Sequence record: MZ475895.1
Length of the DNA: 64,000 nt
Direction: 5' to 3' (one strand)
Of this stretch, positions 14,056 through 62,424 are shown piece after piece. A program made the position numbers and the translations under genes. The notes under the pieces are model-generated. The model was not told the DNA's origin, did no database searches, and worked only from the letters and a program-made list of their open reading frames with translations. The stretch's first letter is position 1. Every line of letters starts with the position of its first letter.

Positions 14056-14064
14056 TATTTACAG
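14056..14064 (-). promoter_or_regulatory. CTGTAAATA motif
   Basis: 14 nt upstream of the 14042 start; overlaps the upstream Leu-stop codons. Confidence 0.4.
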
Positions 14065-19112: not shown

Positions 19113-19374
19113 TTTTGTCCTCTAAAACAAATTGGAGAATACCCTCAATGTTTACAGCTTTCAGTTGCTGTCCTGTCTGCATCAACAGACCATTGAGCAC
19201 GCCGAGTAAATCAGCGCTGTGGCAATTGGGTGCAATCTGATGAACGAAAATATCGTCAGGGATATCACCAGGATTAAGCTGCCAAGCAGTACGCAAGGCA
19301 GCTCCCATGAATGACGGTCGTTCCACCAGTTGCTTGTTCAGAAACGAACAAACATCTTCGGCGCTCAACATCAT
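19090..19374 (-). CDS. Hypothetical protein
   Basis: 94 aa between the polymerase and the clamp. Confidence 0.55.
   Translation of the reverse strand: MMLSAEDVCSFLNKQLVERPSFMGAALRTAWQLNPGDIPDDIFVHQIAPNCHSADLLGVLNGLLMQTGQQLKAVNIEGILQFVLEDKNEDLPTS
19149..19157 (-). promoter_or_regulatory. CTGTAAACA motif upstream of the clamp gene
   Basis: 37 nt upstream of 19112. Confidence 0.5.
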
Positions 19375-22300
19375 TTCTTCGTAATCCTCTTGACTGCGTT
19401 CTTGAGGAGACTGCGGCTGATTTTGATTTTCTTCTTCGCATCACCAGCAGCTGCGGCAGCTTTCTTAGCCTTCTCTTCGGCTTCGTATGCTTCCCACTGC
19501 TTGATGTTCTTCGGAAGTTCTTTCTTCCACAGATCAATGTTCTTCTGATCTTTCTTGGTCAGAGGATTCACTTTGCCCATAGAACGAATCTTGATGCCAT
19601 TAGCCCACAGTTGCTTCTGCATCCACGTGGACATGAGATGGTACTGGTCTTCCATGATGCTATCAAGTTTCTTATCGACGTCGAGATCAGCTTCGCCCAA
19701 CTCATCACGCTTCTGCTCAAGGCCAGCACGAATATGCTTCCTGAGTTGTTCGTAAGAGAAGTCCCAGCCTTCAACATCTTTCTCTGATGCACCGATCTCA
19801 AAGTCGATCTCAGGGACAGATGTGAACTCAAACCCTGGATGACGTTTCTGTACAAGTTCGACCACTGCACTTGTCATGGCACGCTCAATCATATCAAGCG
19901 CGAGGAAAATCCAATCGTAGTGACAGTCAACGGTCAAGGAGTCATGCACCGATACGTTCATATCAAAGTCAGGATAGACACCGTTTGCTTTCCAGTACTC
20001 AAACTTCATGCGGTCCAGAATACGAATCGCACTCATCATCAAGTCAGAACCAAAGCCCTGAACGGGACTGTTTACCGCACGACGGTTACATGCTGCATGA
20101 ACCATGTTCGCGTCTTTGTGCGACTCAGGTAACATGAAGCCCCACAGGTAACGACGACGACCAACAGGCGATTCAACGAAGAAGTTCTGATGAGCAAAAC
20201 TCTGAATCTTATCAAACCACTTCAAGCCAACAGGGAAGCGTTTAAGGAACTTGCCTTTGATCTCTTCGATCTCACCAACTTCACGTCCAGTTGACTTCGC
20301 AAGACCTTTGTTACCCTGCTGGTAGATCAGTCCGAAGATTACTGTCTTAACCGCGTTACGTACGGACTTTGTTACGTCCATTACGTTTGGAATACCGAAG
20401 AAGTATGCGGCGTTAATCTTATGCACGTCACCTTCTGCTTCTACGCGGTGCTTAATCCACGGGTCAGGCACGGTACGATAACGATGACGCAACTCACGAC
20501 CTTGTTCGAATACGTCTGCTACACCTTGGTCACCCGAGATGATTGACCAACCTCTAACTTCGTGCGCCGAGTAGTCGACCTTGATTAACAGGCGATTCTT
20601 ACGCGCAATCAGAATACGTTTGATCAACTTACCCATCTCGCTACGACTCGGAACCTGTTGCAAGTTCGGGTCAGATGCAGATGTACGACCTGTCACAACT
20701 TTTAGATAGCTGTACGTTGGTCGAATCGAACGGTCATGCTTGAAGTCCTCACTCTCGCCCCACAGCTTCAACAGGCTGTTAACGTAGGCGTTCTTGAGTT
20801 TGTACGCTTTACCTAACTTGGTATACAGCGAGACAAGAGGAAGTTCTTTGTACGCCTCTTGGAAGTCTTTATCGAGCTTCGCAGACTTCTTACCGTTATC
20901 ACGGAGTTGCTCGCCTTCCTTGAGAGGTTTCAGGCGCATCACATCGATGAACAGGATTTGCTTATGCTCCTGCTTCGACATATCGAACTTCGTGACCTCG
21001 ACTTTGCCCATAAGACCCATCTTAGGAACATTGTCGTCTCTGCATATCACGGCGTTCGCTGCTTTAACTTCAGGACTCGACATGAACTCGCGTTCAACGT
21101 TTCGAATCTCTTCATTGATTGGACTGTTTGGCAAGTTGAGCTTAAACAGGTAATCAATGTCGGCACCAGCGCCTGTTGTCTCCAAGACACTGAACGCATG
21201 AATCTGGTCGGAGATTTGCTCACCCACCAGCGACTCATACTTCGTGTACTTGCTATCGACGCCACGCTTAATCTGCGACAGATAGATACGGAACGGAACG
21301 ATAACGTCAAGGCCCGCATACTCCTGTACAGCTTCGTCAAGGTCAGAGTCGGCGATTGTCGCACGCATCTCTTTACCAAACGATACTTCGTGATAAACAG
21401 TCGTACCGTACTGCATTGCAAGGTTGGCTAAGTTGTAGTAACCTTGGCCAGTAACGGTCAACAGCGATTTCGCGTTTTCATCGTTACCAAACTCACCCGC
21501 TTGAATATCCCAGACGTCAGCGCAATAACTACGAATGCCAAAGTTGGAACGCATTACGTTCAGGTCAAACTTCGCATTCGTATAGATCTGAACCTTGTTG
21601 TCGTTGTCTTCGAAGTAGTCACGGAACATATCACTAATTCGACGCAACTCTTTACCGCTGAACGGACTGTCTCTGTGATAGATTGGAATCACATAGGCTG
21701 TCTCACCGTCGCACGACAACTGCACGGTCTGAATCTTGTTTTTGATTCGATTCAGGTTCTCGGTTTCGGTATCGACTGCGACCAGCTTAGCACGCTTCAT
21801 CTTTTTCAAGATCTTCTCAAGCTGCTTAACTTTGGTCACATACACCAGCTTCCAGTTGCGATCTTTACCGCAGGTCACTGGCTTGATCGCATAGCGCATA
21901 CCCTTGTTGAGCCACGGCAACATCCAACGTGCCATGTAACCCAGAGTATACGACGATGCGTTTATCACAGCAGGGTTCAGGACTGTGTGATAACTGACGT
22001 TCGGCAGATGAATGAAGCTATGCTTCTTGCCATCGTGCTTGAGCTTGGTGGGTATCTCAACTCCGTACCAGTGCTCATAGTGTTCTTTTGAATACTGAAT
22101 CCTTTCATTGTTGAGCGCCTTGAACGGAGCTTTACCAAAAGTCAGAACGTAGTCTGGCTTGTAGTCAACAATCAGATCACGAATACGATCAGCGAATGCT
22201 TGGTCAGCATCTTCCTTGTACTGCTCAGACTTATCATACGTCTTGAACATGTTGTAGCTAACAACGAGGAAGTTCCAATCGTCTAACGTGGTCTTTGTCG

Positions 22301-22535
22301 GGAACACGTCTTCGAGATACTGAATCTGATTCAAGAACAAATCGCCTTCTGTGCTGCTAAAGATCTTACCATTACGCAGGTCTTCAGTTGGCATGTGATC
22401 GAGGACAAGTAGTGCTTTACCGCCTTTGGCGCTTTTACTAACGCCTTTTAAAATACGAACCCCGTCATAAGTCTGCACGTCGGCAAACTGTTCAGGTGGA
22501 TCGAAGTCAAGAGCAACGTGCTTGATTTTCACCAT
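19371..22535 (-). CDS. polA: Family A DNA polymerase with an N-terminal UDG-like domain and a 3'-5' exonuclease
   Basis: Exo VAVDTETE / NAKFDL / YAGLD; TGRTSASDPNLQQVP; motif A DYSAHEVR; motif B RNAVKTVIFGLIY; motif C VHDS. Confidence 0.95.
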   Translation of the reverse strand: MVKIKHVALDFDPPEQFADVQTYDGVRILKGVSKSAKGGKALLVLDHMPTEDLRNGKIFSSTEGDLFLNQIQYLEDVFPTKTTLDDWNFLVVSYNMFKTYDKSEQYKEDADQAFADRIRDLIVDYKPDYVLTFGKAPFKALNNERIQYSKEHYEHWYGVEIPTKLKHDGKKHSFIHLPNVSYHTVLNPAVINASSYTLGYMARWMLPWLNKGMRYAIKPVTCGKDRNWKLVYVTKVKQLEKILKKMKRAKLVAVDTETENLNRIKNKIQTVQLSCDGETAYVIPIYHRDSPFSGKELRRISDMFRDYFEDNDNKVQIYTNAKFDLNVMRSNFGIRSYCADVWDIQAGEFGNDENAKSLLTVTGQGYYNLANLAMQYGTTVYHEVSFGKEMRATIADSDLDEAVQEYAGLDVIVPFRIYLSQIKRGVDSKYTKYESLVGEQISDQIHAFSVLETTGAGADIDYLFKLNLPNSPINEEIRNVEREFMSSPEVKAANAVICRDDNVPKMGLMGKVEVTKFDMSKQEHKQILFIDVMRLKPLKEGEQLRDNGKKSAKLDKDFQEAYKELPLVSLYTKLGKAYKLKNAYVNSLLKLWGESEDFKHDRSIRPTYSYLKVVTGRTSASDPNLQQVPSRSEMGKLIKRILIARKNRLLIKVDYSAHEVRGWSIISGDQGVADVFEQGRELRHRYRTVPDPWIKHRVEAEGDVHKINAAYFFGIPNVMDVTKSVRNAVKTVIFGLIYQQGNKGLAKSTGREVGEIEEIKGKFLKRFPVGLKWFDKIQSFAHQNFFVESPVGRRRYLWGFMLPESHKDANMVHAACNRRAVNSPVQGFGSDLMMSAIRILDRMKFEYWKANGVYPDFDMNVSVHDSLTVDCHYDWIFLALDMIERAMTSAVVELVQKRHPGFEFTSVPEIDFEIGASEKDVEGWDFSYEQLRKHIRAGLEQKRDELGEADLDVDKKLDSIMEDQYHLMSTWMQKQLWANGIKIRSMGKVNPLTKKDQKNIDLWKKELPKNIKQWEAYEAEEKAKKAAAAAGDAKKKIKISRSLLKNAVKRITKK

Positions 22536-24736: not shown

Positions 24737-27700
24737 TTACACTGACTTGTCTTTCGACGCAGTGAGTTTCAGTTTGGTCAATGCAGCCAGACACTGTTTC
24801 ATGTTCGGGATGCTGTAGCCAGCTTTCTGAATACGGTTGATACGCGCTTTCGCACCAGCAACGTTCTTCACGAAACTAATCCACATACCAGACGACAGGC
24901 TGAACGTACCGAACTTACGAGTGTTCGGGATTTTCGTTCCCACGAAGCGTTTCACTTTCGGGTTAGTCGCAAGGTCGAACATGATGCGCAGACGATCTTC
25001 CATCACCATCGGATATGCTTTGATGTGCTTAACATCTTTCGCAGAGGTATGACGAATCTGGAAGAACTGTTTCAACTGCGACTGCGCCTTAACAGCCAGC
25101 TGGTAGTTGAAGCTCAGCTTAGGCGTAGACTCATCGAAGAAGTCCTGAACGAACTCCAGACGGCGAGAGGACGGACCGTCAAAGTCCAGCTTCTTAGCCT
25201 CGATGAAGTCCAAGAACTTCTCAAAGTCAGAGTAGTACGCGCAGTCGATATACACGTAATCCCCGAACTCGGTGAACTCGAAGTCCTTGAGCGCTTTCGC
25301 ATCTGGGTCGGTCGCATCAGCATACAGAGCAACGAAGCCGTTGTACACAGTAGGCGTCAGCTCCAGAGACATATCGGTACCGTCGTCCAGTGTAACAGCA
25401 GTACCACGAACAGCCTTGCGCACTTTGTTGTCCAGCGGAGGAAGTTCAGCAGCCTTACGACGACGAACACGGGCAGCTGCCTGCTCTACGCCTTCGTTGA
25501 TTGGCTTACCTTCTTCTTTGTTCGCTTTACGTTGAGTAACGCGGGCGTTCTTACGCTCTTGAGCCTCAACTTTCTTCTCGGTTGCTTTCGAGTCGGCAGT
25601 TTGAGTCTCATCGGTCACGGTGTCTTCGACTTCAACGCGCTTGGCTTCTGCCTCAACACGCTTGCGGTCTTTAGCTGTCGCCCACGGCTTACGCACTTCA
25701 AAGAAGCGTTTCAGATCAGCAGGGGATACCTTACCAGCGTAATGCACTTTGTTCGCAGGCACAGTAACGATTTCCTCGCCACCAGCAAGACGAACACGCA
25801 CGGTACTGATAGGGCTGTCCGCACGCAGCTTACCGTCAGCAGTACGAACCGTAACGCTCACGATGATACCGTTACCGAACTCAGTCACAACAGGTGCACG
25901 GTTCAGCGCGTCTTTCACGTTCTCGCCACTTGAGAAGTTCTGGTTGCGTGCCCAATCAAGCAGACGCTCCAGTCCCCAGTTATGACGGTCTGGGATCTTC
26001 TGGTTAGCAACGATAGGTACCTGCTCCATGATACGGAAGTCACGCAGAGCCGGAGTAGCAGGCAGCGGCTGCATTGCTGCAATCGTTGTCTTACGCATCT
26101 CTTGGAACTCTTGCGCTTCAATATCGTTCAGGTCACGCTTGGCCAGGAAGTACGGCTTAAAGTCTTCCATCGTGTTGTTATCGATCAACAGACTTGCATT
26201 CATCTTGATTGGAGCAAGCTGATACTGGTCGAGTTTCTCGTAACGCTGGTTACCTTTCTCGTCGAAACGAGTTTTCTCCAGCGTCTTCCACATCAGACGT
26301 GCAACCTTACCTACTTCAAGAGTCTTGTTCGTCATCACCCAATCGATGAACACGGCTTCGCGTTTCATATCGCCTGGCTTACCGTTCTCATCAAGCACGG
26401 CAGCAGCAACATCAGGACGGAAGATACGCGCAGTAGACTGATCGTATGTACCCGGCGACCACGGTGTGTCACAGCGAATGATACGACTACCCATCTGCAT
26501 GTTGTGGCCTTCACTGATTGCCTGTTCGTTAGCAATCAGAATCTGCACACGGTCATCGGTCTTGAACGCGTCAAGGTTGGCCTCTTTGTTCTGGCCTAAC
26601 TTACCGACTTCACCGTGATACACAACAGCGACCTTCTTATAGTTCTCAGGCAGAGAGTTATAGATTGCGTTTGCAGCACGCGTGTAGCGAGTGAACACAA
26701 TCAACTTGCCCTGAACCTCTGGTTTCCAGTAGTCCGGGTCTTCCGGAGGTGGAACCATTGAAGGTGGCAGTGTTTGACGCTGGAACTCTTCGGACTGTTT
26801 ACGCGCCAGATACTTCTGACCCTGATAGACAGCCATATCAAGTTCACGAGGAGTAACGCCCTGCGTCCAGTTAAAGATTTGTTGCTCTTTGACCAGCGGG
26901 TCACGTTCAGGCTGCACTTCAAAGTGCTTGCGAATACGCTCGATGATGGTCAGGACTTTAGCAGAGACGAACTTGGTGACGCCCGCGTTTTCAAACGTCA
27001 GACGAGCAACGTCATCACCCATCGGGTCGGTCAGCATCATCTCCATGCGCTGGAAGTACATGTTGAGGTCAGCGTTACCTGCGAGCAATGCGCCCAGGTC
27101 ATCACCTTCTTCAATATCATCTTCGTCAATGTCGTCAGAGGCAGTAGCTTCTGCACCATCCTCTTCGTCATCTTCACCAGCAGATGCAGCACGGCGTTTG
27201 GCGTTGTTAGCAGCTTCCTGCAACTTCTCCAACACCTGAGCATACATCGCGTTATACACCTCTTGGTGCAGCGATGAGTTAGGCACAGTCGGGTCATCAA
27301 TCTCAACCTGAATGAAGGTATCGATTGGGTTCGGCAACATGAACGCCCAGTTCTTACGCTTGAACGAGATGAACGCCGTGTGGTTAGACATACGCGAGTG
27401 AGCACGACGAATCATTTCAATGTCGTCTTTCGCGCCGTCGTATGCAACGTCGAGAGAGTCACCGAACATCGCAGGCGTCATCAGTGCAGCCTGACCAACA
27501 ATGTCACGCACGCGGTCAGTTACCAGAGTACCAGTAGCGATACGCGCATAGCGAACAGATGGTGCGGTGAATACTGCTTTGGTGTTGAAGTGCACCTGAG
27601 AGCCTGACTGGCCTCCAGAGAAGTTCTTAACCTTATGCGACTCATCCAGCATAACGTAGCTGAAATTGAAGCGGTTAACGAACTCAACAGCACCACGTAC

Positions 27701-30571
27701 GCGAACACGCACGCCACCAATGTCAACGTTGAACGTACCAGTCTGCAAGAAGCTCAGGCCAACGATGAAGAGGGTGTTCTGGGGAGCCTGCTTAATCACG
27801 TCGTACATACGGTCTTCACCCCAGGAGTTCACGGTGTCAGACGTAATAGGTACGGCGTTCCAACCATCAGCAATCTTGTGCAAGTCATCACACCAGTTCG
27901 ATACGAGGTTGGTAGGGCAGATGATCAGAGGACGAATGTTCTCTTCACCCAGGTCATTCAGCTCCTGAATGGTAGCAGCAATATCGGACAGACCAATGAT
28001 TGTCTTACCACCGCCAGGCGCGATAAAGACTGTAGCGTAACGCGGACGGCGGCGCAGTGTTTTGTGCGCTTCTACCTGATGTGGTAAGAGTGCAGCACCA
28101 GCTTTGAGTCCAGGAATACGAATGTCTTCAATCGTGATACCCTGATCAGGCTTAAGGCGTTCAATCTCAGTTTCCGCAGATTCGAAGATCTCCAGAGACT
28201 TAGGAATGACCGCGCTGTACATCTTGGAGAACGGCAGAATGATTTGCTGCAAACGTTCTGCGCCTGGCGCTTCGTCGCTTTCAACCAGAGAGCTAAACAG
28301 CTTCTTACGATCAGCATTGCCGATAGCAGCAGCCAGCTCACGATACAGCGCACCACCGAAGTAGTTGTTCAGTCGCGCCATGTCGCTGATTTTGGCAGTC
28401 TGACCCATCACAAAGTAATGCGTGTGATTAGGCAGAGACTCCATAGCACCAGCAATGTCACCGCTCATCTCAGTAACGGTAGTCGCTACCATGTTCGAGC
28501 CGCGCAGGCCAGACGCATCGTTGAGCACGCGTAGCATGATACGCATAGCAATCAGACCAGAATCACCCTGAGCCAGAGTAAAGTCATTCTCAATCAGACC
28601 CGCGTACAGGTTGTTGTCGAGAGAGCTTTCGGTCAGTGACGCGTTCTCTGCATCCATACCGATTGCAGCACGCGCTTGCTTGATCAGCGTAGGCAGATCA
28701 GGCACCAGCTTGTGGTTGAATGCGAAAGAATACGCAGCCACAGTCTGTGCGATGATGCTAACAAGGCCATCAACTTCCGAGTCTTCGGTAGTCGTGAACA
28801 CGATGGTCTTATCGTTGACGCTATCGATCAGTTTGCCCTTCGCAGCTTCCAGTTTAGCCGCCTGCAACAGCAGGTCATTAGCAACACGATACGAGGTCAT
28901 GTTACCGCTAGACTGGTTGCTCATGATGTTGCGGATAACGTTCGACGCTGAGCGGAAGTTAGGCGTTTCGCCAGGCTCTGCAAAGTCGTAACCAAGCATA
29001 TCAGCAACGTCTAACGAGTTAGGCGCTTTCATACCGACAGTACGGGTTTCGTTAACCGACAGGCCACCACCGTTCGAGGTGTTAACCACCAGCGCGAAGT
29101 CTGGGTCGACGCCGATACACACGTTGCTGAATCGCGTTAACGATTTGGCTTCCGCCTGCATCGAGTTATCGAAATCGAGGTTGCCGTTCTGAATAGCGAA
29201 GATGTTGGTACGCAGCGTCTGGTGTTCAGTAGACAGCGGTACGCCTTTCGCAAACAGATGTTCCAGCACGCGGTTCAATTCGGTTTCGTAGTTGCGCACC
29301 ATCTCAACGTCAATGTCTTCACGGCGCGGCAACACAGACAGCGTACCGTTAGGCATGATGGTCAGATCGTTCTCATCTGCCACAACATCATGGACAGCGT
29401 AGCCGAACTTCTCACGCAGTTGTTTGAGCGCAGGCAGACCAGTAGCAGAGGTAACGTAACGTGGGATACGCGCAGCACGCGTGATACCAGTACGAGTAGA
29501 ACCACTGATACGGAAGTAATAGCTCGTCCAGCCCTGGAACCAACGATACAGACACATGGTCTGAGTGTCAGCACCCTGAGAGATGTACTCAACCATCTCT
29601 TTGCTCAGGTTAACAATCAGGCCGCCTTCTGCGCGAATGTCGGTAGCAATTGCTACTTCGTTGAACTCCAGCGGATAGTCGTGGCTGATCTTCATCGCTT
29701 CGAGTTTGCGATCAATCATCTGCTTGCCTGGGATAGAGCGCAGGCCCAGAGTCATGAAGTCGCCGAGCGCATCAACAACGTCTTTGTCCAGATTACGGAA
29801 CAGGTTGATATCCAGATTGTGCATCTTCGGGTGAACACCACGAAGCGCCGCGTTGTAGATAGACCAGTCTTTGCCGAGAGGGATACGAACAACTTTGGTC
29901 TGGAACACGTTGGCGTTGGTACGCGCTTCACCGAAGATATCCTTGTACAGGGTCTTCGCGGCGTTGATAGCTGCCTGAGCAATATCAGAGCTATACACCT
30001 GAATGTTCATCTGCTCAAAGTTAGAGTCGTTATCGACACGAGGACGATCACTACCCTGACTGTTCGTAACGTTGAAGTTACCCGCACCAGCAGCTGGAGA
30101 CTGCGGGCATGGCGTGCCTGACATGATAATGTCTTTGCCGCCTGGGTACACGGTACTGTTTTCGATGATAGCGCCTGAGGTATTACTCAAGTTCTCCGCT
30201 AACGCCGTTTTGATTTCACGCGACAGCTTACCGCTGTTCAGCAGCACCTGAATCTTGTTCGTGGACATGTCCACATATTGCTGCACACGCTTGGTGAACT
30301 CTTCTGGCGCTACTTCCAGAATGTCTTCGAACTCAGCACCATTACGGATGATGTAGTTGAGCAAGTCGAATGCTGCATAGATACGGGCGACAGTTGACGC
30401 AGAGAACACGGCCAGTGTTTCATAGTGACGGCGTGCTTTGCCTGTCACGTACATCTTGGACATGAGCTGCTCGGAGCCGAACGGTACAGGTTTTACCGCC
30501 AGCGCCTGATTAAAGCTATCAGCAATTTGCTGGGTCGCTGTGGCGGAGGTACTGATAATCTGATTCATCAT
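24737..30571 (-). CDS. Giant SNF2/SF2-type helicase-domain protein, probably virion-associated
   Basis: 1944 aa; LLPHQ, APGGGKT, LIICP, MLDESH, IATGT, SEGHNMQ, QSTARIFR; N-terminal IISTSA. Confidence 0.8.
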   Translation of the reverse strand: MMNQIISTSATATQQIADSFNQALAVKPVPFGSEQLMSKMYVTGKARRHYETLAVFSASTVARIYAAFDLLNYIIRNGAEFEDILEVAPEEFTKRVQQYVDMSTNKIQVLLNSGKLSREIKTALAENLSNTSGAIIENSTVYPGGKDIIMSGTPCPQSPAAGAGNFNVTNSQGSDRPRVDNDSNFEQMNIQVYSSDIAQAAINAAKTLYKDIFGEARTNANVFQTKVVRIPLGKDWSIYNAALRGVHPKMHNLDINLFRNLDKDVVDALGDFMTLGLRSIPGKQMIDRKLEAMKISHDYPLEFNEVAIATDIRAEGGLIVNLSKEMVEYISQGADTQTMCLYRWFQGWTSYYFRISGSTRTGITRAARIPRYVTSATGLPALKQLREKFGYAVHDVVADENDLTIMPNGTLSVLPRREDIDVEMVRNYETELNRVLEHLFAKGVPLSTEHQTLRTNIFAIQNGNLDFDNSMQAEAKSLTRFSNVCIGVDPDFALVVNTSNGGGLSVNETRTVGMKAPNSLDVADMLGYDFAEPGETPNFRSASNVIRNIMSNQSSGNMTSYRVANDLLLQAAKLEAAKGKLIDSVNDKTIVFTTTEDSEVDGLVSIIAQTVAAYSFAFNHKLVPDLPTLIKQARAAIGMDAENASLTESSLDNNLYAGLIENDFTLAQGDSGLIAMRIMLRVLNDASGLRGSNMVATTVTEMSGDIAGAMESLPNHTHYFVMGQTAKISDMARLNNYFGGALYRELAAAIGNADRKKLFSSLVESDEAPGAERLQQIILPFSKMYSAVIPKSLEIFESAETEIERLKPDQGITIEDIRIPGLKAGAALLPHQVEAHKTLRRRPRYATVFIAPGGGKTIIGLSDIAATIQELNDLGEENIRPLIICPTNLVSNWCDDLHKIADGWNAVPITSDTVNSWGEDRMYDVIKQAPQNTLFIVGLSFLQTGTFNVDIGGVRVRVRGAVEFVNRFNFSYVMLDESHKVKNFSGGQSGSQVHFNTKAVFTAPSVRYARIATGTLVTDRVRDIVGQAALMTPAMFGDSLDVAYDGAKDDIEMIRRAHSRMSNHTAFISFKRKNWAFMLPNPIDTFIQVEIDDPTVPNSSLHQEVYNAMYAQVLEKLQEAANNAKRRAASAGEDDEEDGAEATASDDIDEDDIEEGDDLGALLAGNADLNMYFQRMEMMLTDPMGDDVARLTFENAGVTKFVSAKVLTIIERIRKHFEVQPERDPLVKEQQIFNWTQGVTPRELDMAVYQGQKYLARKQSEEFQRQTLPPSMVPPPEDPDYWKPEVQGKLIVFTRYTRAANAIYNSLPENYKKVAVVYHGEVGKLGQNKEANLDAFKTDDRVQILIANEQAISEGHNMQMGSRIIRCDTPWSPGTYDQSTARIFRPDVAAAVLDENGKPGDMKREAVFIDWVMTNKTLEVGKVARLMWKTLEKTRFDEKGNQRYEKLDQYQLAPIKMNASLLIDNNTMEDFKPYFLAKRDLNDIEAQEFQEMRKTTIAAMQPLPATPALRDFRIMEQVPIVANQKIPDRHNWGLERLLDWARNQNFSSGENVKDALNRAPVVTEFGNGIIVSVTVRTADGKLRADSPISTVRVRLAGGEEIVTVPANKVHYAGKVSPADLKRFFEVRKPWATAKDRKRVEAEAKRVEVEDTVTDETQTADSKATEKKVEAQERKNARVTQRKANKEEGKPINEGVEQAAARVRRRKAAELPPLDNKVRKAVRGTAVTLDDGTDMSLELTPTVYNGFVALYADATDPDAKALKDFEFTEFGDYVYIDCAYYSDFEKFLDFIEAKKLDFDGPSSRRLEFVQDFFDESTPKLSFNYQLAVKAQSQLKQFFQIRHTSAKDVKHIKAYPMVMEDRLRIMFDLATNPKVKRFVGTKIPNTRKFGTFSLSSGMWISFVKNVAGAKARINRIQKAGYSIPNMKQCLAALTKLKLTASKDKSV

Positions 30572-51669: not shown

Positions 51670-52947
51670 CTACTTCTTCTTTTTCTTCTTCTTGGGCTTT
51701 TCGTCTTCGTCGTCATCTTCGACTTCGTTACCCAATTTCACAGACAGCTTGCCTTCATAAATGTCGGCCATCAGACTGAGGATAGTTGATTCCAACATAA
51801 TGTCAGCAGGCACGGAGGTACTGTTGAATGCTACCTCTGCTTCTGCCAGTGCTTTCTGCAAATAGATCAGGCAAACAAGATTGACCTTAATCTTCTCTTG
51901 CTTAACCATATTCAGGAACATCTTGAGGCCAGCAGACTGCCACTTGTTTGTGTCAGAGTAATGACCGAGTGCACCGTGAAGTACCCAGCGTGCTTTCGCT
52001 ACGATTGCTCGTGGGTTGTTTGCTTCACGCAGGAACTGAATGACGCCGATAAGATCCATCGCAATGAACGCACCGATAGTCTGAACTGCTTTGCCTTCCA
52101 TTTCGATTTCTGGATCGGCTGCCGCAAGTTCTGCCACCAGCTTCTTATCAAACGCTTCACCACCTTTAACTGACGCAAAGATGTTTTGCATCATCGTGAT
52201 TGCACCACGCATCTGACCGCCTGAATACTCGGCAACCTGATGCAACGCTGATTCAGCTTTATCACGCGCTTTATCTTTCTTAGGCATGATGCCAAGAATA
52301 TCAGCGATCTCTGACAGACGCTTCGCAATGATGTCAGTAGGAATCGGCCTGATAGGAAGTTGTGTCATACGACTGATCATCGTATCTTTCATCTTCTCAG
52401 GGTTCGTGGTCACAAAGATGAACACGACATGCGCTGGTGGTTCTTCAATGATCTTGAGGAACTTCGATTCGGCTGCGCTCGACATGAGGTGCGCTTCATC
52501 GAGAATGAACACACGGCGCTTGAACATAGGTGCCAGAGGTGCTGAGTCAACGATGCGCTGCGAGCCTTCAACTTTACCAGAGTCGCTACCCATATCGAAC
52601 TCTTGCACGTCAGGGTGCTGGCCGTTGTTGTACATCATGCGACACGAGGCACACTTACCGCACGCGCTAAACGAATCACAGTTGATGTACTTTGCGACGA
52701 GACGCGCAAACGTTGTTTTGCCGCTACCCAGATGACCTGTGATAATCATCGTTGATGGAACTGTTTTCGACTTCTGCCAACCGTTCATGATCTTGACGAT
52801 GTGGTCTTGGCCTACATAGTCTTCGATACGAGTCGGTCGGAACTGAGCGGCAAAGTTTACCGTAGTCAGTTCAGTAGAAGATTCGGACTTGGAACTATCT
52901 GAACCAAAGTCGCGTTTCTTCTTCTTTTTCTTTTCTTCTTTCGCCAT
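51670..52947 (-). CDS. dnaX: DNA polymerase III gamma/tau-like clamp loader ATPase
   Basis: FRPTRIEDYVGQ, GHLGSGKTT, Zn motif CDSFSACGKCASC, ILDEAH, LKIIEEPP, ISR (SRC-like). Confidence 0.9.
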   Translation of the reverse strand: MAKEEKKKKKKRDFGSDSSKSESSTELTTVNFAAQFRPTRIEDYVGQDHIVKIMNGWQKSKTVPSTMIITGHLGSGKTTFARLVAKYINCDSFSACGKCASCRMMYNNGQHPDVQEFDMGSDSGKVEGSQRIVDSAPLAPMFKRRVFILDEAHLMSSAAESKFLKIIEEPPAHVVFIFVTTNPEKMKDTMISRMTQLPIRPIPTDIIAKRLSEIADILGIMPKKDKARDKAESALHQVAEYSGGQMRGAITMMQNIFASVKGGEAFDKKLVAELAAADPEIEMEGKAVQTIGAFIAMDLIGVIQFLREANNPRAIVAKARWVLHGALGHYSDTNKWQSAGLKMFLNMVKQEKIKVNLVCLIYLQKALAEAEVAFNSTSVPADIMLESTILSLMADIYEGKLSVKLGNEVEDDDEDEKPKKKKKKK

Positions 52948-56261: not shown

Positions 56262-56774
56262 TTAACGAGGAATGTAATCAGAGACGTTAGCTTCCTTAGC
56301 GTCTGCTGTACGGTGGCGAATCAGGCGGCTAGTTGTATCTGCTGGTGGGAAGCAGACAATAGGCTTGACGACCATGACTGTCAGTTGTTGCGGCCACATG
56401 TCGTGATCGATCATACGCGAGGCAATAATATGTGCGGCGCGTTCTGCATCTTCACGTAAATGGTCAAACTCCAACAGCAACACCTGAGGCTTCTGATCAA
56501 TCTCGTTAACAGCATGATCAAGTTCCATCAGGTTCGTAGCAACATAGCTTCGGCAAGGCAGCGTTCCAGAGTAATCACGCGGTCCGATATAGACAACGTT
56601 CTCTGGGTCAACATCATCGATTGCATTGCAGATGAAATCAGGGACGAACTTGCCCAAGTCCCCTTCCAGTGCGACAAAAGACATATCAAAAGGATCGTGC
56701 CTCATAACGGTCATGACAGCACGTCCATAGCCAGACAGATAGTTCATCAGTCTGTATACGAGATCACTATGCAC
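56262..56774 (-). CDS. Hypothetical protein
   Basis: 170 aa; GAGG RBS. Confidence 0.55.
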   Translation of the reverse strand: MHSDLVYRLMNYLSGYGRAVMTVMRHDPFDMSFVALEGDLGKFVPDFICNAIDDVDPENVVYIGPRDYSGTLPCRSYVATNLMELDHAVNEIDQKPQVLLLEFDHLREDAERAAHIIASRMIDHDMWPQQLTVMVVKPIVCFPPADTTSRLIRHRTADAKEANVSDYIPR

Positions 56775-56785
56775 GTTAACCTCTT

Positions 56786-56941
56786 TTAGAATGCGGGAGT
56801 GTAGGTGTATTTGCGCTTCTTCAACTTCGCTGCCGCGTGTTCACGGTCTAAGTCGTCGAAGATACCTACCCGTCGGTGGTAACGAAATTTCGGATGAACG
56901 GAAATATGTTTGACGATAGCACTTACGGGTTCGGTAGGCAT
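56786..56941 (-). CDS. Small basic protein missed by the ORF track (MPTEPVSAIVKHISVHPKFRYHRRVGIFDDLDREHAAAKLKKRKYTYTPAF)
   Basis: 51 aa; GAGGTG RBS; fills the intergenic gap exactly. Confidence 0.6.
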   Translation of the reverse strand: MPTEPVSAIVKHISVHPKFRYHRRVGIFDDLDREHAAAKLKKRKYTYTPAF

Positions 56942-56952
56942 ATATCACCTCG

Positions 56953-57969
56953 TTACTTGTACTGTCCCGTCACAACAAAGACGAGAGAATCAGGTTTCTT
57001 CCGCCCGTTAACAATGAGATACTTGAACGGACGTGTGGGTTCAAGCTGGCCTTCGACCACTTGAGTGATTGCAATATCTTTGACTTCACCAAAGGTCAGA
57101 GCGTTGTCCATCTGATCGAAGGAGAAGGCATTTGAAAGCGAAACAGAGTTGTGAGACTCTACCGTAATACCTTCAGGCTTCTTGGAGGCACTACGTTTCG
57201 AGTCCAGCCACTTCTGCCAATCGAACATCGCATGGTTCATTGAACGAGAGACGAGCGAACGGGGCACTTTCCCTTTCAACGATTTGCGAAACTCGGTCAC
57301 AACTTCCGACACAGGAGGACCAGCATTAACGCGACGACGATCTTTCAGAATCGTGCGCATCTTATCAGACCAGTAGTTGTAGGCATCAACTCGAATCTGA
57401 ATGTATTCTTCAAGGCGCTGAGCCTGTTCGAGGGTACACTCAATTTCGAACGTCACCTGACTTCCACGTTCTGTACCGTTGTGTTTGATAGCAGCTTTCT
57501 CTGCTTTCGTCTCGCTGATCAGTTTTTCTTTTACACACGCCGCCCATGCATATGCAAATGTGAGACGCATGTCAGGATAACGGTTCATCACCTGCACGCG
57601 TGTTTGAAGCAACAACGGAATGGCATAGCCCAGATGACAACGACGATCAATAAAGGCAGAACGGAGTTCTCCAATATCTTTGTCCAGCTCGTTGAGGTCA
57701 TTGAACAAATAACCCGAGTCACGGTACGACTGAGAAATGTGGTTACCTTCACGAAGTACATCGTCGATGGTCAAACCTTTTTCAACGATGCTGTTGTATG
57801 CTTCTTCCAAAGTAACATCAGGCCAAGTGCGATAACCTGTTTGGTCTAAAGTAAGATGACGGAAGCAATACAATTCATACATGTGCAAAAAGTCCGCGAA
57901 TGGCAGACTTTTGGGATATACGAATTTTTTAATCACCTTCTTCGGTTTGATAACTGCTTTCTTGATCAT
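56953..57969 (-). CDS. Protein with a C-terminal TnpB/Cas12f-like WED-REC lobe and no RuvC
   Basis: TFEIECTLEQAQRL...RVDAYNY has the same TxEQ...L...YN spacing as HTH_OrfB_IS605; ends exactly where RuvC-I would begin. Confidence 0.5.
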   Translation of the reverse strand: MIKKAVIKPKKVIKKFVYPKSLPFADFLHMYELYCFRHLTLDQTGYRTWPDVTLEEAYNSIVEKGLTIDDVLREGNHISQSYRDSGYLFNDLNELDKDIGELRSAFIDRRCHLGYAIPLLLQTRVQVMNRYPDMRLTFAYAWAACVKEKLISETKAEKAAIKHNGTERGSQVTFEIECTLEQAQRLEEYIQIRVDAYNYWSDKMRTILKDRRRVNAGPPVSEVVTEFRKSLKGKVPRSLVSRSMNHAMFDWQKWLDSKRSASKKPEGITVESHNSVSLSNAFSFDQMDNALTFGEVKDIAITQVVEGQLEPTRPFKYLIVNGRKKPDSLVFVVTGQYK

Positions 57970-59659
57970 TGCGTTCTCGCTGGAGTTTGGCGGCTATTTT
58001 GAGATATTCTCTATTTACAGTTTCTGGGTCTGTAGCGAACCCTCGCTTAGTGAAAAGGTTACGCTTGACCTTACCCATGCTATAGCCGTTATCCCAGAGT
58101 TTCATGAATATCAGACAGTTTAACGTCGGGTCCATGAATGGTTTTTCTTTCAGAGCAACGTCACCAGAATACTTGGTCAGCAGGATAGCGCCGTCGAACT
58201 CTGCGCTACACCACTCGGCCTCAGCTAAGACCTTGAGCAGGTTGTAATTCTCCATACCCTGAATCAAATGACTAAGGATGGTATACTGGTCACGCTTGTA
58301 CCGAGCAACAGGAACTCGATGCGAACACCCCGAAGCATTTTTGAAGAAGTGATCTGTCGTGCGAGAATAAGAGGCGTTCTTAATTCTCAGGCACAACTCC
58401 TCAACGACAAGAGATGCAGGCTCGAACATAGCCTTCCACTTACCCCAGATGCGGGTGGCATAGTTCTTGATTTCTTCCTCTGTCATTTTGTACTTCTTGC
58501 CTACGTTTTGTACCTTAGTGTCAGATACAAGTTGACGGAAAATATCCGTCATCATAGCGCCGGGATCTTCCTTTTCCGAAGAGGTATCAAACGTCTGTTT
58601 GAAATACCTCTGATTACTCCACCCGCTATATATGCCGCCGTAGTTCAAAGTCTTGGACGTGCCCCTCGTGATCTTTAGCGTCTTCGCCACGTAGTCATGG
58701 TCAAGATGTTCAAGCATCGGACATTCGAGGCCGTACTCCGACATGAGGTCTAGCAGCAAAACAATCTGAGCATTCGGCATATCAAAGTTACGACCATAAG
58801 AGTGATCGAAACATAGCAGCTTAACAATCTTCGGCAGTGCAGCCGCTGTACCGAATAGACGACTACCAACATGGTTCATCGAATACTCGTCGTAGAACTC
58901 CACCAGCCTATCATTCGGGTTATCGTTGACAAGACGTAACCCAAAGCGGCAAATCTTCTTCAGGAAAGAATCAAGGCGCATGTGCAAACCGTAACGTCGG
59001 TTAGTACGAGCGTTCTCCTTAATGTCCAAGAAGCGGTCCAAATAAAATCTATAGGGACGCTGATTAGCCTGAGCACGATTGATAAGCTCAATCACTTCCC
59101 TGTTCTTGCTTTTGTGGTAGATAAAGTTATGAGGGCGTCTAAACGGCTTCGCCTTCACTTCTTTTTCAAAAGCGGCAGCAACCAAGTCATCCTGTGACTG
59201 AAAAATCGCCCTGCGACGATTCGGCTTCAACAAATTGTACATGGGCTCCTCAAGAGCACACAAATCTGCTAAAGTTTGGGCAAGAACGGTGTTAAGCGAA
59301 TACTTACGGGCGATCCCCTTAATGTAATCAAAGCGGGTTTTGTTCACCTTACGGTCTAACCACAAGCGAACACCGTCATTTTTCTGACGAACCATCGCAT
59401 AACGCATCTTTTCATGAGCCCGCATGTAACTATAGGTCACTACGGTTTCATTATAGACGTTTCGTTTCTCCATCATGCGGGATTTATCGATCAAATGGAT
59501 GAAAAACCACGCCAAACTTTCGTAAAACTTATCTGATTTAGCGCCTTTCGGCTTGGGGCACTGATAAATCATGTCCCAGAAATACTTATGAAAGGATTTA
59601 GGTACCGCGCCCGCCCATCCTGGGGGCACAGCTTTCTTCCCGTACACGGGTTTGGCCAT
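57929..59659 (-). CDS. Divergent PolA/T7-RNAP-superfamily polymerase (TV-Pol-like)
   Basis: GSRLF, NFDMPNAQ (motif A), RGTSKTLNYGGIY (motif B), LIQGMEN, AEFDGAIL (motif C) in canonical order. Confidence 0.6.
   Translation of the reverse strand: MAKPVYGKKAVPPGWAGAVPKSFHKYFWDMIYQCPKPKGAKSDKFYESLAWFFIHLIDKSRMMEKRNVYNETVVTYSYMRAHEKMRYAMVRQKNDGVRLWLDRKVNKTRFDYIKGIARKYSLNTVLAQTLADLCALEEPMYNLLKPNRRRAIFQSQDDLVAAAFEKEVKAKPFRRPHNFIYHKSKNREVIELINRAQANQRPYRFYLDRFLDIKENARTNRRYGLHMRLDSFLKKICRFGLRLVNDNPNDRLVEFYDEYSMNHVGSRLFGTAAALPKIVKLLCFDHSYGRNFDMPNAQIVLLLDLMSEYGLECPMLEHLDHDYVAKTLKITRGTSKTLNYGGIYSGWSNQRYFKQTFDTSSEKEDPGAMMTDIFRQLVSDTKVQNVGKKYKMTEEEIKNYATRIWGKWKAMFEPASLVVEELCLRIKNASYSRTTDHFFKNASGCSHRVPVARYKRDQYTILSHLIQGMENYNLLKVLAEAEWCSAEFDGAILLTKYSGDVALKEKPFMDPTLNCLIFMKLWDNGYSMGKVKRNLFTKRGFATDPETVNREYLKIAAKLQRERNDQESSYQTEEGD
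58012..58020 (-). promoter_or_regulatory. CTGTAAATA motif upstream of the TnpB-lobe gene
   Basis: 43 nt upstream of 57969, inside the upstream CDS. Confidence 0.5.
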
Positions 59660-59693
59660 CTTGGAACCTCAAAAAGCTCGTTCTCTTGGCTGA

Positions 59694-59702
59694 TCTTTAC
59701 AG
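59694..59702 (-). promoter_or_regulatory. CTGTAAAGA variant upstream of the divergent polymerase
   Basis: 35 nt upstream of 59659. Confidence 0.45.
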
Positions 59703-59715
59703 AATCCTGCTTGTT

Positions 59716-59955
59716 CTACGTCAGAGACTCAAATTCTATCAGATAGTTGATTAGGTTAGGTAGATTAGGTATGGCATAGCATCTTATGCAGCATGAGCGC
59801 ACTATATTCACACGGAATACAGCCTTCTCTCCCAAATCCCTAGCGCCTAGACGCATATCCCTAGCCCACAGACATATCGTAGGGGTCGAAAACGCGAAAA
59901 CCGCTTTAGCATGGTTATTTGGTGCCAATTCAGCGGAATTGATTTCTAAGCGCAC
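59716..59955 (-). CDS. Possible small ORF (may be non-coding)
   Basis: 79 aa with a GTG start and weak RBS; region rich in short TAGG/CCTA repeats. Confidence 0.25.
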   Translation of the reverse strand: MRLEINSAELAPNNHAKAVFAFSTPTICLWARDMRLGARDLGEKAVFRVNIVRSCCIRCYAIPNLPNLINYLIEFESLT

Positions 59956-60001
59956 TTTGAGACTATTCTTATTGCCGTAGGTCGATTCTGTAGGAAAGTG
60001 G

Positions 60002-60670: not shown

Positions 60671-61777
60671 CTAGAGAATTTTAAAGCCCTTGAAAATGTT
60701 ATACGCGTATTCTTTGCGCTGCACGGCACGGGTGGTGCACACCCATTCCCATTGATCGTTCTTTGCTGTGCGCTTCTTCGGCGCTTCCATCACTTTCAGC
60801 ACATAGTTTTTGAAAGGCAGAACCAGCAGATCTTCAGGCTCAAGCGGACCGCAACGCGCAGGCAGAACAACTGTCAGGTTACCTACAGTCAGTTCCTGAT
60901 CGTAATCCAGCACGTTTGCTTCTTCGCTGATATTGCCTTTGACGTAAGGCACGCCCAGATCGAATATCATTGTGGCATGTGTGAAAGCCTCAACGCCACC
61001 GATTCTGATCGTTACGTTCTTGCCACGAAACTTATCCAGCGTTTCCGCTTTCAACTCGACCGCTACGCCGTTCAGCATCAGCATAGGACGTGGGAAAGCA
61101 GGAAGCACTTTCTCATTCAATCTGACCGAATAAGTCGCCTGCGTAAAGTATTTTGGAATAAGCTGATCGAACTCAACGAAGCCGTCTTTGCGTACCTGAC
61201 GGAACGTTGAAGGGCTGGTGGACTGATCGTATGTGTAGCCTTCAATGCGTAGCGCATGGTGCTGCATCATAACGTTGTACACGAAGCCTGTGCTAATGAA
61301 TCCAGGCACAATGCCTTGACGAAAGCACACAGCACAGTTGGCGTTGTTACCGCCATCCCATTTGACGCTCATCTCTTCTTCGGTGTCGCCCATGAGGTCT
61401 GCTGCGCTCAGCGTTGCGTTTTCGCCTTCGTCGAGGTCATCAAGGCTAACCGTTTGACGTCCACCACCAAACATGCCTTTCGACACAGTGTTCAGCTTGA
61501 CGTTGCCCTGAGTGCCGAGGCTTGAACGGCCAACGCTTTTCATTCCACCCAAGTTGGAATCAAAGTCGTCGTTGACTGTTTTGTTGCAACTGCACGTCAG
61601 ACCGAATTTTGCTTTCTTGAATATGATAATGTCCGTAGCGTCAACAGCTAATGCCTGTTCTACCTTGGACTTGACCACTTCCTGAATGGAGTCGAGGCGC
61701 TGCTGCACTCGCTTTGTCTCGTAGGTCTTGTGGCGATCATATTTATTACGGGGTTTGCCACGTTCAATCCAGCTCAT
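60671..61777 (-). CDS. Putative head-completion / neck protein
   Basis: CSC...CAVCFRQG Cys motif and beta-rich C-terminus, as in head-tail joining proteins of large phages. Confidence 0.45.
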   Translation of the reverse strand: MSWIERGKPRNKYDRHKTYETKRVQQRLDSIQEVVKSKVEQALAVDATDIIIFKKAKFGLTCSCNKTVNDDFDSNLGGMKSVGRSSLGTQGNVKLNTVSKGMFGGGRQTVSLDDLDEGENATLSAADLMGDTEEEMSVKWDGGNNANCAVCFRQGIVPGFISTGFVYNVMMQHHALRIEGYTYDQSTSPSTFRQVRKDGFVEFDQLIPKYFTQATYSVRLNEKVLPAFPRPMLMLNGVAVELKAETLDKFRGKNVTIRIGGVEAFTHATMIFDLGVPYVKGNISEEANVLDYDQELTVGNLTVVLPARCGPLEPEDLLVLPFKNYVLKVMEAPKKRTAKNDQWEWVCTTRAVQRKEYAYNIFKGFKIL

Positions 61778-61806: not shown

Positions 61807-61875
61807 TGTGCTGTTTCCGTGCCTTTCACATCAAAAATATTTATTTAGTAGCACAATGAAAATACGGAGTTTCAT

Positions 61876-62424
61876 ATGCGCGTTCTTTCAGGCGACCCGG
61901 GTAAGGTTAACTTCGCGCTGTCTGTCCAGGAGTTCAAGGACAAACGCATTACTGTTATAGGCACGCGGATGTTCCGCAGTCCTATTCAGAACCTGCATTA
62001 CGATATGCGTCAGCCCACAAAAGAGTTTCTTGCCGAGCTTGAGCTAATATGGAAACTCTACGGACCGTTCGATGCCATGTGCTTTGAGCGCTTCCAGTCT
62101 CGTGGTCTTGGCGGCAACACCATTGAAGCTATCAGCCTCATGCTCGGTGTCATATCGTTCTTTGCGTTGAAGAAGAAATGCCCTCTTGATTTAATCACTG
62201 CTAGTCAGTGGAAAAATGCTTTCAACCGCAGCATGGACCTTAAAGGCTATTATGCGGAATACAATCTGACGTCAAAGAAAAGCCAAAAAGCAATTCATGA
62301 ATTTGATGCGAGCCTTATTGGCGTCTATACCTTTTATCGTCATTCAGAAATCAAACCGTTTGCAGGCTTCAATCGTATCATCGATGCGTATGTTCCACGA
62401 TTCCTGGAAGCACCTGTTCTTTGA
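61876..62424 (+). CDS. RuvC-like Holliday junction resolvase
   Basis: VLSGDPG, CFERF, HEFDASLIG catalytic acidic pattern. Confidence 0.75.
   Translation: MRVLSGDPGKVNFALSVQEFKDKRITVIGTRMFRSPIQNLHYDMRQPTKEFLAELELIWKLYGPFDAMCFERFQSRGLGGNTIEAISLMLGVISFFALKKKCPLDLITASQWKNAFNRSMDLKGYYAEYNLTSKKSQKAIHEFDASLIGVYTFYRHSEIKPFAGFNRIIDAYVPRFLEAPVL

Follow-up and report, generated by a model that had tools for sequence, protein, structure and literature searches.

Known TV-Pol proteins and a candidate relative in Erwinia phage pEa_SNUABM_14

The TV-Pol family of minimal polymerases from transposons and viruses was described by Iyer, Abhiman & Aravind in 2008, and Sputnik V13 was placed in it (PMC2579912). 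Its members are built from thumb helices, a beta-hairpin whose Arg is absolutely conserved, a pair of Asp residues in the palm and an RxxxK motif in the fingers, and are never fused to a nuclease; either a D5-like helicase is fused or adjacent to them, or they carry an extra N-terminal domain and lie in an integrase, resolvase or transposase neighborhood (PMC2579912). The integrase-linked subset with the extra N-terminal domain was predicted to function as primase-polymerases (Iyer et al. 2008, PMC2579912). Here, we analyzed a stretch of 64,000 nucleotides (nt), hereafter the window, which corresponds to positions 124001–188000 of record MZ475895.1 (100% identity of the candidate coordinates to the record) and comes from Erwinia phage pEa_SNUABM_14, a jumbo phage of 264 kb with Erwinia amylovora as host. 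One gene in this window encodes a protein that is very likely an exonuclease-less, probably active member of the superfamily of PolA and T7 RNA polymerase (RNAP), with a TV-Pol-like architecture.

The sole biochemically tested TV-Pol is CcPol-MP of SCCmec, a DNA primase-polymerase that makes primers de novo (Bebel et al. 2020, PMC7581432). On its own, CcPol acts as a primer-dependent DNA polymerase, and it retains the equivalents of Pol I E710 and F762 (PMC7581432). The phage locus resembles CcPol-MP and the PolA-SSB primases (PMC7581432; Rice 2022, bioRxiv 10.1101/2022.12.02.518924) in that an exonuclease-less A-family polymerase is followed directly by a downstream gene. Unlike CcPol, which has a recognizable PolA domain, the candidate has no detected PolA domain and has Gln (Q298) as the predicted gate residue. 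Furthermore, its hosts are Enterobacterales and their phages, not Firmicutes.

The candidate gene is the following feature.

57929..59659, minus strand: gene of the putative exonuclease-less, TV-Pol-like polymerase of the PolA superfamily (evidence: open reading frame (ORF), PHROG 30690, AlphaFold, and Foldseek against PDB and BFVD)

The ORF starts with ATG, has no internal stops and encodes 576 aa. It is 100% identical to pEaSNUABM14_00219 (QYW04544.1), which is labeled "hypothetical protein" in the record.

Conserved motifs and their relation to DNA polymerases

The family was aligned in sets of 19 and later 36 sequences, both reaching down to 15–20% identity. All motifs quoted in the preliminary description were present in the order given there: GSRLF (aa 265), NFDMPNAQ (aa 291), RGTSKTLNYGGIY (aa 332), LIQGMEN (aa 465) and AEFDGAIL (aa 486). 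In both alignments, G265, R267, D293, K336, H464, G468 and E470 were fully conserved and N291, Q298, E487, D489 and G490 were almost fully conserved; in the 19-sequence set, E487, D489 and G490 were found in 18/18 sequences covering those positions and Q298 in 18/19. Given this invariance, the motif strings are beyond chance. They map to the gene as follows.

58850..59119, minus strand: codons 181–270, predicted thumb-like helical region and then a beta-hairpin with the invariant G265 and R267 (GSRLF; GGRLFE..GGFQNLP in relatives), from the model and the alignments
58781..58783, minus strand: codon of D293, putative catalytic Asp of motif A at the end of strand 290–293, from hhalign; invariant in 19/19 sequences
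58766–58768, minus strand: codon of Q298, at the predicted steric-gate position, from its hhalign pairing with E480 of T7 DNA polymerase (DNAP)
58628..58666, minus strand: codons 332–344, predicted motif B or O-helix (R332-K336-Y340-Y344), aligned to T7 DNAP, Pol gamma and the phage's own PolA
58250..58270, minus strand: codons 464–470, H464-x-x-Q467-G468-x-E470 helix, predicted to correspond to the "QG" helix of PolA, from its alignment with NspvQG in the PolA encoded in the window
58190..58201, minus strand: codons 487–490, putative motif C E-F-D489-G (EHDG in most relatives) at the turn of hairpin 483–487/490–493, from the model and the alignments

The consensus blocks of the family (GGRxFE..GGFQxLP, NYDIxxxQLxIL, K...Y..IF, LAHxIQGxES and S-x-EHDG) resemble the Pol I motifs TGRLSS..NLQNIP, DYSQIELR, RRxAKxxNFGxxYG, QGxAAD and HDE. 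Motif C is of the type E-(H/F)-D-G and is accompanied by a QGxE helix, in agreement with the earlier suggestion that the protein shares the (H)DG-type motif C and the QxxE motif of TV-Pol. Within motif B, K336 was invariant, position 332 was Arg or Lys in 15/19 sequences, and position 344 was Tyr in the jumbo-phage clade of the query and Phe elsewhere (13/19).

The extreme divergence of the family and the motif-B Arg and Tyr that are not universal (Arg or Lys in 15/19, Phe at position 344 in 13/19) would fit a catalytically dead polymerase fold kept as a structural or DNA-binding protein. However, both catalytic Asp residues, the hairpin Arg, the motif-B Lys and the QG-helix residues are kept across the 36 sequences, and the gene is under strong purifying selection with its motif-bearing segments best conserved; we regard a dead enzyme as extremely improbable.

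By hhalign, the family profile matched T7 DNAP with E values of 0.0016 and 0.0031. The alignment, weak in itself (E ~0.002), paired D293 with D475, Q298 with E480, and R332/K336/Y340/Y344 with R518/K522/Y526/Y530. The match to the phage's own PolA (E 0.011) spanned motif B to the QG helix, whereas T7 RNAP gave no significant match (E 0.65 and 0.54). In a profile search of PDB with the family alignment (hmmsearch), the best E value was only ~0.04, and the best 13 matches were all to motif B of Pol gamma (E about 0.04). D489 is assigned as the putative motif C Asp from model topology and invariance, none of the tools having aligned it with a reference motif C. These profile statistics are singly weak, yet they appear mutually consistent and agree with the predicted fold.

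Predicted fold and comparison with DNA and RNA polymerases

AlphaFold modeling from the diverse 19-sequence alignment gave a predicted local distance difference test (pLDDT) score of 81.6 and a predicted template modeling (pTM) score of 0.82, with pLDDT mostly >85 in the motif-bearing region. This model replaced one from a shallow alignment, which was unusable (pLDDT 54.8). The modeled topology is that of a canonical family-A palm: strand 290–293 closes with D293, which was also invariant in the 36 sequences, and D489 sits at the turn of hairpin 483–487/490–493. In the model, thumb helices span residues 183–239, R267 comes after strand 252–255, helix 332–345 bears R332, K336 and Y344, and helix 451–480 bears H464, Q467, G468 and E470.

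The Foldseek search suggested in the preliminary description returned a thumb-palm-fingers fold of the PolA/RNAP type: the top 50 PDB matches were all PolA or T7-like/mitochondrial single-subunit RNAPs. The DNA polymerases matched were Klenow (E 1.1e-3, probability 1.00), Aquifex Pol I, Taq, Bst, DpoZ and T7 DNAP; the probability was 1.00 for Klenow, Taq, Bst, DpoZ and T7 DNAP and 0.84–1.00 for all DNA polymerases, mostly over ~330 columns with a root-mean-square deviation (rmsd) of 5.5–9 Å. The T7 and mitochondrial RNAPs gave probabilities of 0.5–0.96 and rmsd values of 18–26 Å. As judged from this model, the candidate matches DNA polymerases better than RNA polymerases. In the viral database BFVD, the orthologs came first (Yoloswag 7e-43; JA29, JA11 and JA13), followed by unnamed viral proteins, a Zamilon virophage "DNA replication protein" (1.3e-4) and giant-virus proteins, and further down by canonical phage PolAs from 4.5e-4 and T7-like RNAPs from 3e-3; the margin between the Zamilon protein (1.3e-4) and the best canonical phage PolA (4.5e-4) is small.

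The core is preceded by the following region.

59120..59659, minus strand: basic N-terminal domain, codons 1–180, predicted helices and a beta-hairpin, from the model and the alignment; the most variable part between alleles

This domain has an isoelectric point (pI) of 9.95 and a net charge of +18. The first 250 aa have a pI of 10.06 and a net charge of +26, consistent with the basic region of ~250 aa reported earlier. The modeled N-terminal beta-hairpin ends in a conserved (K)CR(E/K)(F/Y)xL, and the domain may be winged-helix-like; no relative was found among PDB sequences. The earlier statement that an exonuclease domain is missing also held, as no invariant acidic residue was present in a 16-member alignment of the N-terminal 180 aa and no exonuclease family in PDB, PHROG or NCBIfam matched the candidate.

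Compared with canonical family-A enzymes (E. coli Pol I Klenow, Taq, T7 gp5 and the phage's own PolA), the candidate shares the fold and carries motifs A, B, QG helix and C in unchanged order, with register-correct profile alignments. It differs from them in having a basic N-terminal domain in place of the 3'-5' exonuclease domain, Gln for the steric-gate Glu and (H/F)DG for HDE, in its identity of <15%, and in being missed by PolA profiles. Since the predicted gate residue is Gln, the sugar preference is not predictable.

With T7-like and mitochondrial RNAPs, the candidate shares the superfamily fold, an N-terminal extension and the lack of an exonuclease. A minimal single-subunit DNA-dependent RNAP, which would transcribe a subset of phage genes or one RNA (e.g., an origin primer) from a promoter read by its N-terminal domain, was considered. 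The fold matches include T7 and mitochondrial RNAPs (probability 0.5–0.96), the N-terminal domain is basic, there is no exonuclease, the steric-gate Glu is absent (Q298), and motif C (E-F/H-D-G) lacks the Glu of PolA; motif C of T7 RNAP (HDS) is also without Glu. However, DNA polymerases match better (probability 1.00, rmsd ~5.5–9 Å versus 18–26 Å), the structural match to T7-like RNAPs is weaker and there is no sequence match to them, hhalign finding T7 DNAP but not T7 RNAP (E 0.65 and 0.54). At 576 aa, compared with 883 aa for T7 RNAP, the candidate is too small for a promoter-specificity loop plus the N-terminal domain, and no counterpart of the specificity loop or of the promoter-binding N-terminal domain was detectable. 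In addition, the gate position holds Gln, not a small residue, and the motif-B equivalent of T7 RNAP Y639 is Phe in 13/19 members. An RNAP is unlikely in our judgment.

The candidate resembles TV-Pol in its predicted thumb helices 183–239, R267, D293, D489 and R332xxxK336 (Lys invariant, Arg partly) and in the absence of a nuclease. A Zamilon virophage replication protein, a homolog of Sputnik V13, is among its best non-family structural matches, and the likeness comes from fold and architecture, not from a sequence profile. Unlike TV-Pol, the phage copy has no fused or adjacent D5-like helicase and no neighboring integrase, the motif-B Arg of its family is not invariant, and Pfam and NCBIfam models are blind to it. 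The preliminary description of a second, divergent PolA/T7-RNAP-superfamily member of TV-Pol type is supported by the fold search, the Zamilon match and the type of motif C, whereas the functions it proposed are not established.

Distribution and annotation of the family

The candidate was assigned to PHROG 30690, a family without a function (E 2e-92). An NCBIfam scan gave 0 families at E<=10, phmmer against PDB gave no match of significance, no PADLOC defense model matched the family, and Pfam placed a domain on none of >160 family clusters, the candidate included. A word-indexed search of 5.8 billion proteins revealed 10 close relatives, all in related jumbo phages, and a profile search of 90% clusters returned close relatives only. 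An exhaustive hidden Markov model (HMM) search of 1.84 billion representatives yielded 20 proteins, 18 of them distant (E 1e-11 to 1e-3); the 10 distant members that were scanned all fell into PHROG 30690. Bacterial members form at least 153 protein clusters at 90% identity, all "hypothetical" and none with a Pfam domain, from Serratia, Salmonella, E. coli, Providencia, Yersinia, Pectobacterium, Pantoea and others.

Among the 48 matching phage records, the gene product is "hypothetical" except in pEa_SNUABM_5, where the ortholog pEa_SNUABM_5_00225 is called a "putative helicase"; we found no evidence for a helicase, and the label is likely an annotation error. In Dickeya phage JA11, the ortholog gp200 is annotated with 405 aa, whereas the frame is open for 545 aa with homology from the upstream start, which is likely a misannotation. 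The preliminary description had allowed that the family might already appear in comparative studies; our literature search found no earlier description.

Promoter-like motif and the replication machinery of the phage

The sequence CTGTAAATA occurs in 7 exact copies, always on the coding strand, whereas about 0.5 copies are expected by arithmetic in 128 kb. The exact sites on the minus strand of the window are at 14056, 22575, 39605, 40980, 49824, 52984 and 58012, and one-mismatch sites are at 19149, 53338 and 59694. With the one-mismatch variants included, the motif ends 26–42 nt 5' of the ATG of PolA, the clamp, the clamp loader, SbcD, two small ORFs, the candidate and the ORF downstream of the candidate.

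59694..59702, minus strand: promoter-like motif of the candidate, CTGTAAAGA, 34 nt 5' of the ATG

Upstream of the orthologs in 7 phages of four genera, the core TGTAAAnA was the sole invariant element. CTGTAAATA is often preceded by a GC hairpin and a T run (e.g., GGGCGGCTTCGGCTGCCC before 39613 and 22583), which is a terminator-promoter arrangement. Because the candidate shares the promoter class of the replisome, a role in DNA metabolism is favored. The earlier proposal that the polymerase transcribes from CTGTAAATA was unsupported: the motif is short, of sigma-type length, and precedes the candidate itself as well as replisome genes, and the phage encodes a sigma factor. The same points also argue against the RNAP alternative.

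The replication and transcription genes of the phage include the following.

Window 19371–22535, minus strand: PolA, 1054 aa (Klenow fragment, E 5e-34)
Window 17934–19112: sliding clamp
Window 51670–52947: clamp loader
Within the window: helicases and SbcCD
Record 190131–191237, just beyond the window: DnaG-type primase, pEaSNUABM14_00228 (PHROG_47, E 8e-28; Aquifex DnaG, E 3e-7)
Record 198177–199214: sigma factor (PHROG 17569, E 3e-156)
Record 199262–200518: SSB, adjoining the sigma factor

The complete replicative PolA noted earlier in the window is thus present. The DnaG-type primase, the sigma factor and SSB are all "hypothetical protein" in MZ475895.1, and PHROG and PDB matches identify them clearly. 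A comparative paper on the group of this phage, the PaBG group, lists PolA, the beta clamp, the gamma subunit and factors of the sigma-70 type, with no mention of either a primase or a phage RNAP (PMC7412058). The reading that the candidate supplies a missing primase was ruled out by pEaSNUABM14_00228, which lies 6.5 kb from the candidate, so that a primase function cannot be argued from a missing primase. Origin-specific initiation would still be the best guess for the role. The reading that the phage needs its own RNAP was weakened by the encoded sigma factor and by the PaBG-group paper, in which no phage RNAP appears (PMC7412058). Since the DnaG-type primase, SSB, clamp, clamp loader, PolA and sigma factor are all present, the candidate fills no obvious gap.

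The candidate lies near the RuvC and SbcCD genes and shares its promoter class with SbcD and the replisome genes, which would suit a DNA polymerase that depends on a primer and is specialized for repair, the filling of gaps, lesion bypass or recombination-dependent synthesis, that is, a proofreading-free PolA helper similar to Pol theta, Pol nu and translesion synthesis enzymes. Its best structural matches are DNA polymerases, it has no exonuclease, a relative on an 83-kb phage contig lies beside a 5'-3' exonuclease gene and a DHH/RecJ-like gene, and CcPol alone is a primer-dependent DNA polymerase (PMC7581432). However, this explanation leaves the basic N-terminal domain unexplained, and the same applies to the exchange of the gene with its upstream DNA, to the ancient pool of alleles, and to the sister branch beside AlpA in island backbones where no other replication gene was seen (below). 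We consider a repair polymerase quite unlikely.

Allelic exchange and the upstream non-coding region

The map position of the gene is shared by its orthologs in 48 phage records, those of Alexandra, AD1, Y3, JA11/13/29/33, Yoloswag, the pEa_SNUABM series and one Yersinia phage. In comparison with Alexandra, the flanking proteins are 62–91% identical, whereas the candidate is 20.6% identical and the next genes are replaced or 25% identical. In comparison with pEa_SNUABM_21, the flanking DNA is 97–100% identical, whereas a block from ~60,060 to ~58,100 is only 62–89% identical. This block comprises the upstream non-coding region and nearly the entire ORF and stops just short of the promoter motif of the downstream gene. 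Between the pEa_SNUABM_14 and pEa_SNUABM_21 alleles, the ratio of nonsynonymous to synonymous substitution rates (dN/dS) was 0.11 with synonymous sites saturated, and the motif segments were best conserved; the candidate is under purifying selection. The divergent block amid near-identical flanks, the dN/dS of 0.11 and the saturated dS together indicate that old functional alleles were moved by recombination as a cassette of the gene plus its upstream DNA. Recent positive selection as the cause of the divergence was ruled out by the same dN/dS with saturated dS, which marks the alleles as old, and a recent mobile-element insertion in the phage was ruled out by the synteny in 48 phage records and the absence of an integrase. 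Unlike a TV-Pol that serves as the sole replicase of a small element, the phage branch belongs to jumbo phages of ~260 kb, in which the gene is fixed and vertically syntenic. The cassette exchange with upstream DNA would also fit co-specificity of a polymerase and its promoter under the RNAP alternative.

59660..60001, no strand assigned: 342-nt non-coding region exchanged with the gene, with tandem 20-mers at 59833–59873 and 11-mers at 59746–59770

A gap of 300–740 bp lies 5' of the polymerase gene in every context examined, in phages and islands alike. The 342-nt region matched no Rfam family, and its RNA fold z-score of -0.11 was not significant. The region was considered as a non-coding RNA (ncRNA) or an origin, and both were rejected on the lack of an Rfam match, the fold z-score, the non-conserved repeats, and the absence of an AT-rich block and of a skew change. 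A perfect 9-nt inverted repeat (TACAGAATC / GATTCTGTA, window 59698–59706 and 59984–59992) brackets the upstream region, with its arms 277 nt apart and one arm overlapping the promoter-like motif. The same repeat is present in Dickeya phage JA11, with arms 279 nt apart and an intervening sequence that is not conserved.

The downstream gene and other features

56953..57969, minus strand: overlapping downstream ORF of 338 aa with its own exact CTGTAAATA at 58012–58020, a possible partner (ORF and motif)

The 338-aa ORF had no PHROG, NCBIfam or PDB matches. Homologs are found in some genera only, with no counterpart in Alexandra, and the protein is unrelated to the 381-aa protein of the islands described below. 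Unlike in CcPol-MP, no OB fold is detectable in this ORF, which is missing or replaced in Alexandra-type phages, and no helicase follows. The ORF was rejected as a CcPol-MP-like partner on the lack of PHROG, NCBIfam and PDB matches and of any relation to the 381-aa protein.

ORFs 56953–57969, 56786–56941 and 56262–56774 are hypervariable between genera; the 170-aa ORF is 25% identical to its Alexandra counterpart. With the surrounding genes 62–91% identical, the whole stretch 56262–57969 of the window is a variable island in a conserved backbone. At window 61809–61948 (minus strand), in the divergent promoter region between ORFs 60671–61777 (minus strand) and 61876–62424 (plus strand), a weak match to Rfam SNORA13 (31 bits versus a gathering score of 53, E 0.02) is almost certainly due to chance. 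Window 24737–30571 (minus strand) encodes a 1944-aa protein of PHROG 21391 ("DNA helicase"), in which only a C-terminal segment of SNF2/ZorD/DrmD-like helicases is recognizable (aa ~1285–1385); most of the protein is uncharacterized.

A sister branch in chromosomal islands

Some distant members of the family lie on large lytic phage contigs beside 5'-3' exonuclease, DHH, UvrD or Thy1 genes; one such relative, on an 83-kb phage contig, is the neighbor of the 5'-3' exonuclease and DHH/RecJ-like genes mentioned above. Other distant members lie in chromosomal islands of Enterobacterales as a core gene of an integrase-AlpA-X-Pol backbone. The order of this backbone is (CbtA), DUF2787, RadC, tyrosine integrase, AlpA, an unfamiliar protein of 381–406 aa, a long gap and the polymerase, and it is kept in Klebsiella, Hafnia, Scandinavium and E. 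coli. The flanking DNA retrieved for these islands contained no tRNA gene, and the 381-aa core protein belongs to no known family. The slot after AlpA is the site of the primase or replicase in P4-like satellites as well as PICIs (phage-inducible chromosomal islands). The variable cargo after the polymerase is a type I restriction-modification (R-M) system, a PtuA/PtuB-like pair or Avs3. Like the second architectural class of TV-Pols, the island branch combines an N-terminal domain with a tyrosine integrase and AlpA; on account of this domain and the integrase neighborhood, it matches the integrase-linked TV-Pol subset of Iyer et al. (PMC2579912).

The cargo raises the question of a conflict-system enzyme, one that would make a nucleic-acid product (a decoy, a signal or a template copy) for defense, counter-defense or phage-satellite competition, with the upstream region maybe serving as template. 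Ancient alleles swapped between near-identical phages are typical of conflict or specificity genes, the sister-branch islands carry type I R-M, PtuA/PtuB-like and Avs3 systems, and the long non-coding gap upstream of the gene in every context resembles reverse-transcriptase systems with an upstream ncRNA. On the other hand, no PADLOC defense model matched, the island gene lies in the conserved backbone and not in the variable cargo, the upstream region has no significant structure or Rfam family, and the promoter type is common to replisome genes. We assign such an enzyme a low probability.

Proposed role and implications

Our preferred role for the candidate, plausible but tentative, is site-specific initiation or priming of DNA synthesis. 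A thumb-palm-fingers core (aa ~180–560), fused to a basic, probably DNA-binding N-terminal domain, would be produced along with the phage replisome under a promoter of the same type. By analogy with family-A polymerases, D293 of motif A and D489 of motif C would carry out two-metal nucleotidyl transfer, K336 together with R332 would bind the incoming triphosphate in a nucleotide pocket lined by Y340 and Y344, and R267 and Q467 would contact the primer-template end. The protein would start or extend DNA synthesis as an initiator primase-polymerase at a particular site, which may be an origin or recombination/repair intermediates, and not in bulk replication or transcription. Its site specificity would reside in the N-terminal domain together with a cis element of the adjoining non-coding DNA; such specificity would explain the joint exchange of the gene and its upstream region, and also the presence of the sister branch in the replication-module slot of integrase-AlpA islands.

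Several observations weigh against this interpretation. The sequence-only link to PolA is borderline (E 0.002–0.04), and the residue correspondences come from weak alignments. TM-scores of the fold matches are low (0.25–0.29), as expected because only one multi-subdomain module aligns. With a DnaG-type primase, SSB, PolA, clamp and clamp loader present, the replication machinery shows no visible gap. Conserved origin-like iterons are absent from the upstream region, whose repeats are short and non-conserved and which shows neither a GC-skew inflection nor an AT-rich block. Finally, the 338-aa ORF is not conserved across the family and provides no detectable OB-fold partner, and no helicase adjoins the candidate, unlike in most TV-Pols.

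In a wider interpretation, which is speculative and which we regard as doubtful, the proteins would form an unrecognized family of minimal, site-specific, self-priming polymerases with a PolA fold, the N-terminal domain recognizing a cognate cis element in the neighboring non-coding DNA, at which nucleic-acid synthesis would begin. Jumbo phages would exchange them as an "initiator plus site" specificity cassette, and in the very common defense-carrying islands of Enterobacterales they would be the replicase; helper-satellite or replication-interference conflicts could link the two.

CcPol-MP overturned the rule that family-A polymerases cannot prime, and the candidate family is far more divergent. 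If active, the candidate would provide a new minimal polymerase scaffold with Gln at the sugar gate, of interest for enzymology and biotechnology, and a third polymerase-type activity in a jumbo-phage replisome; a replication gene would also be identified for widespread integrase-AlpA islands bearing anti-phage systems. The behavior of its alleles as a cassette is a natural experiment on the co-specificity of a polymerase and its site. The interest of the family lies in its being invisible to current annotation, widespread, and evolving as a specificity cassette.

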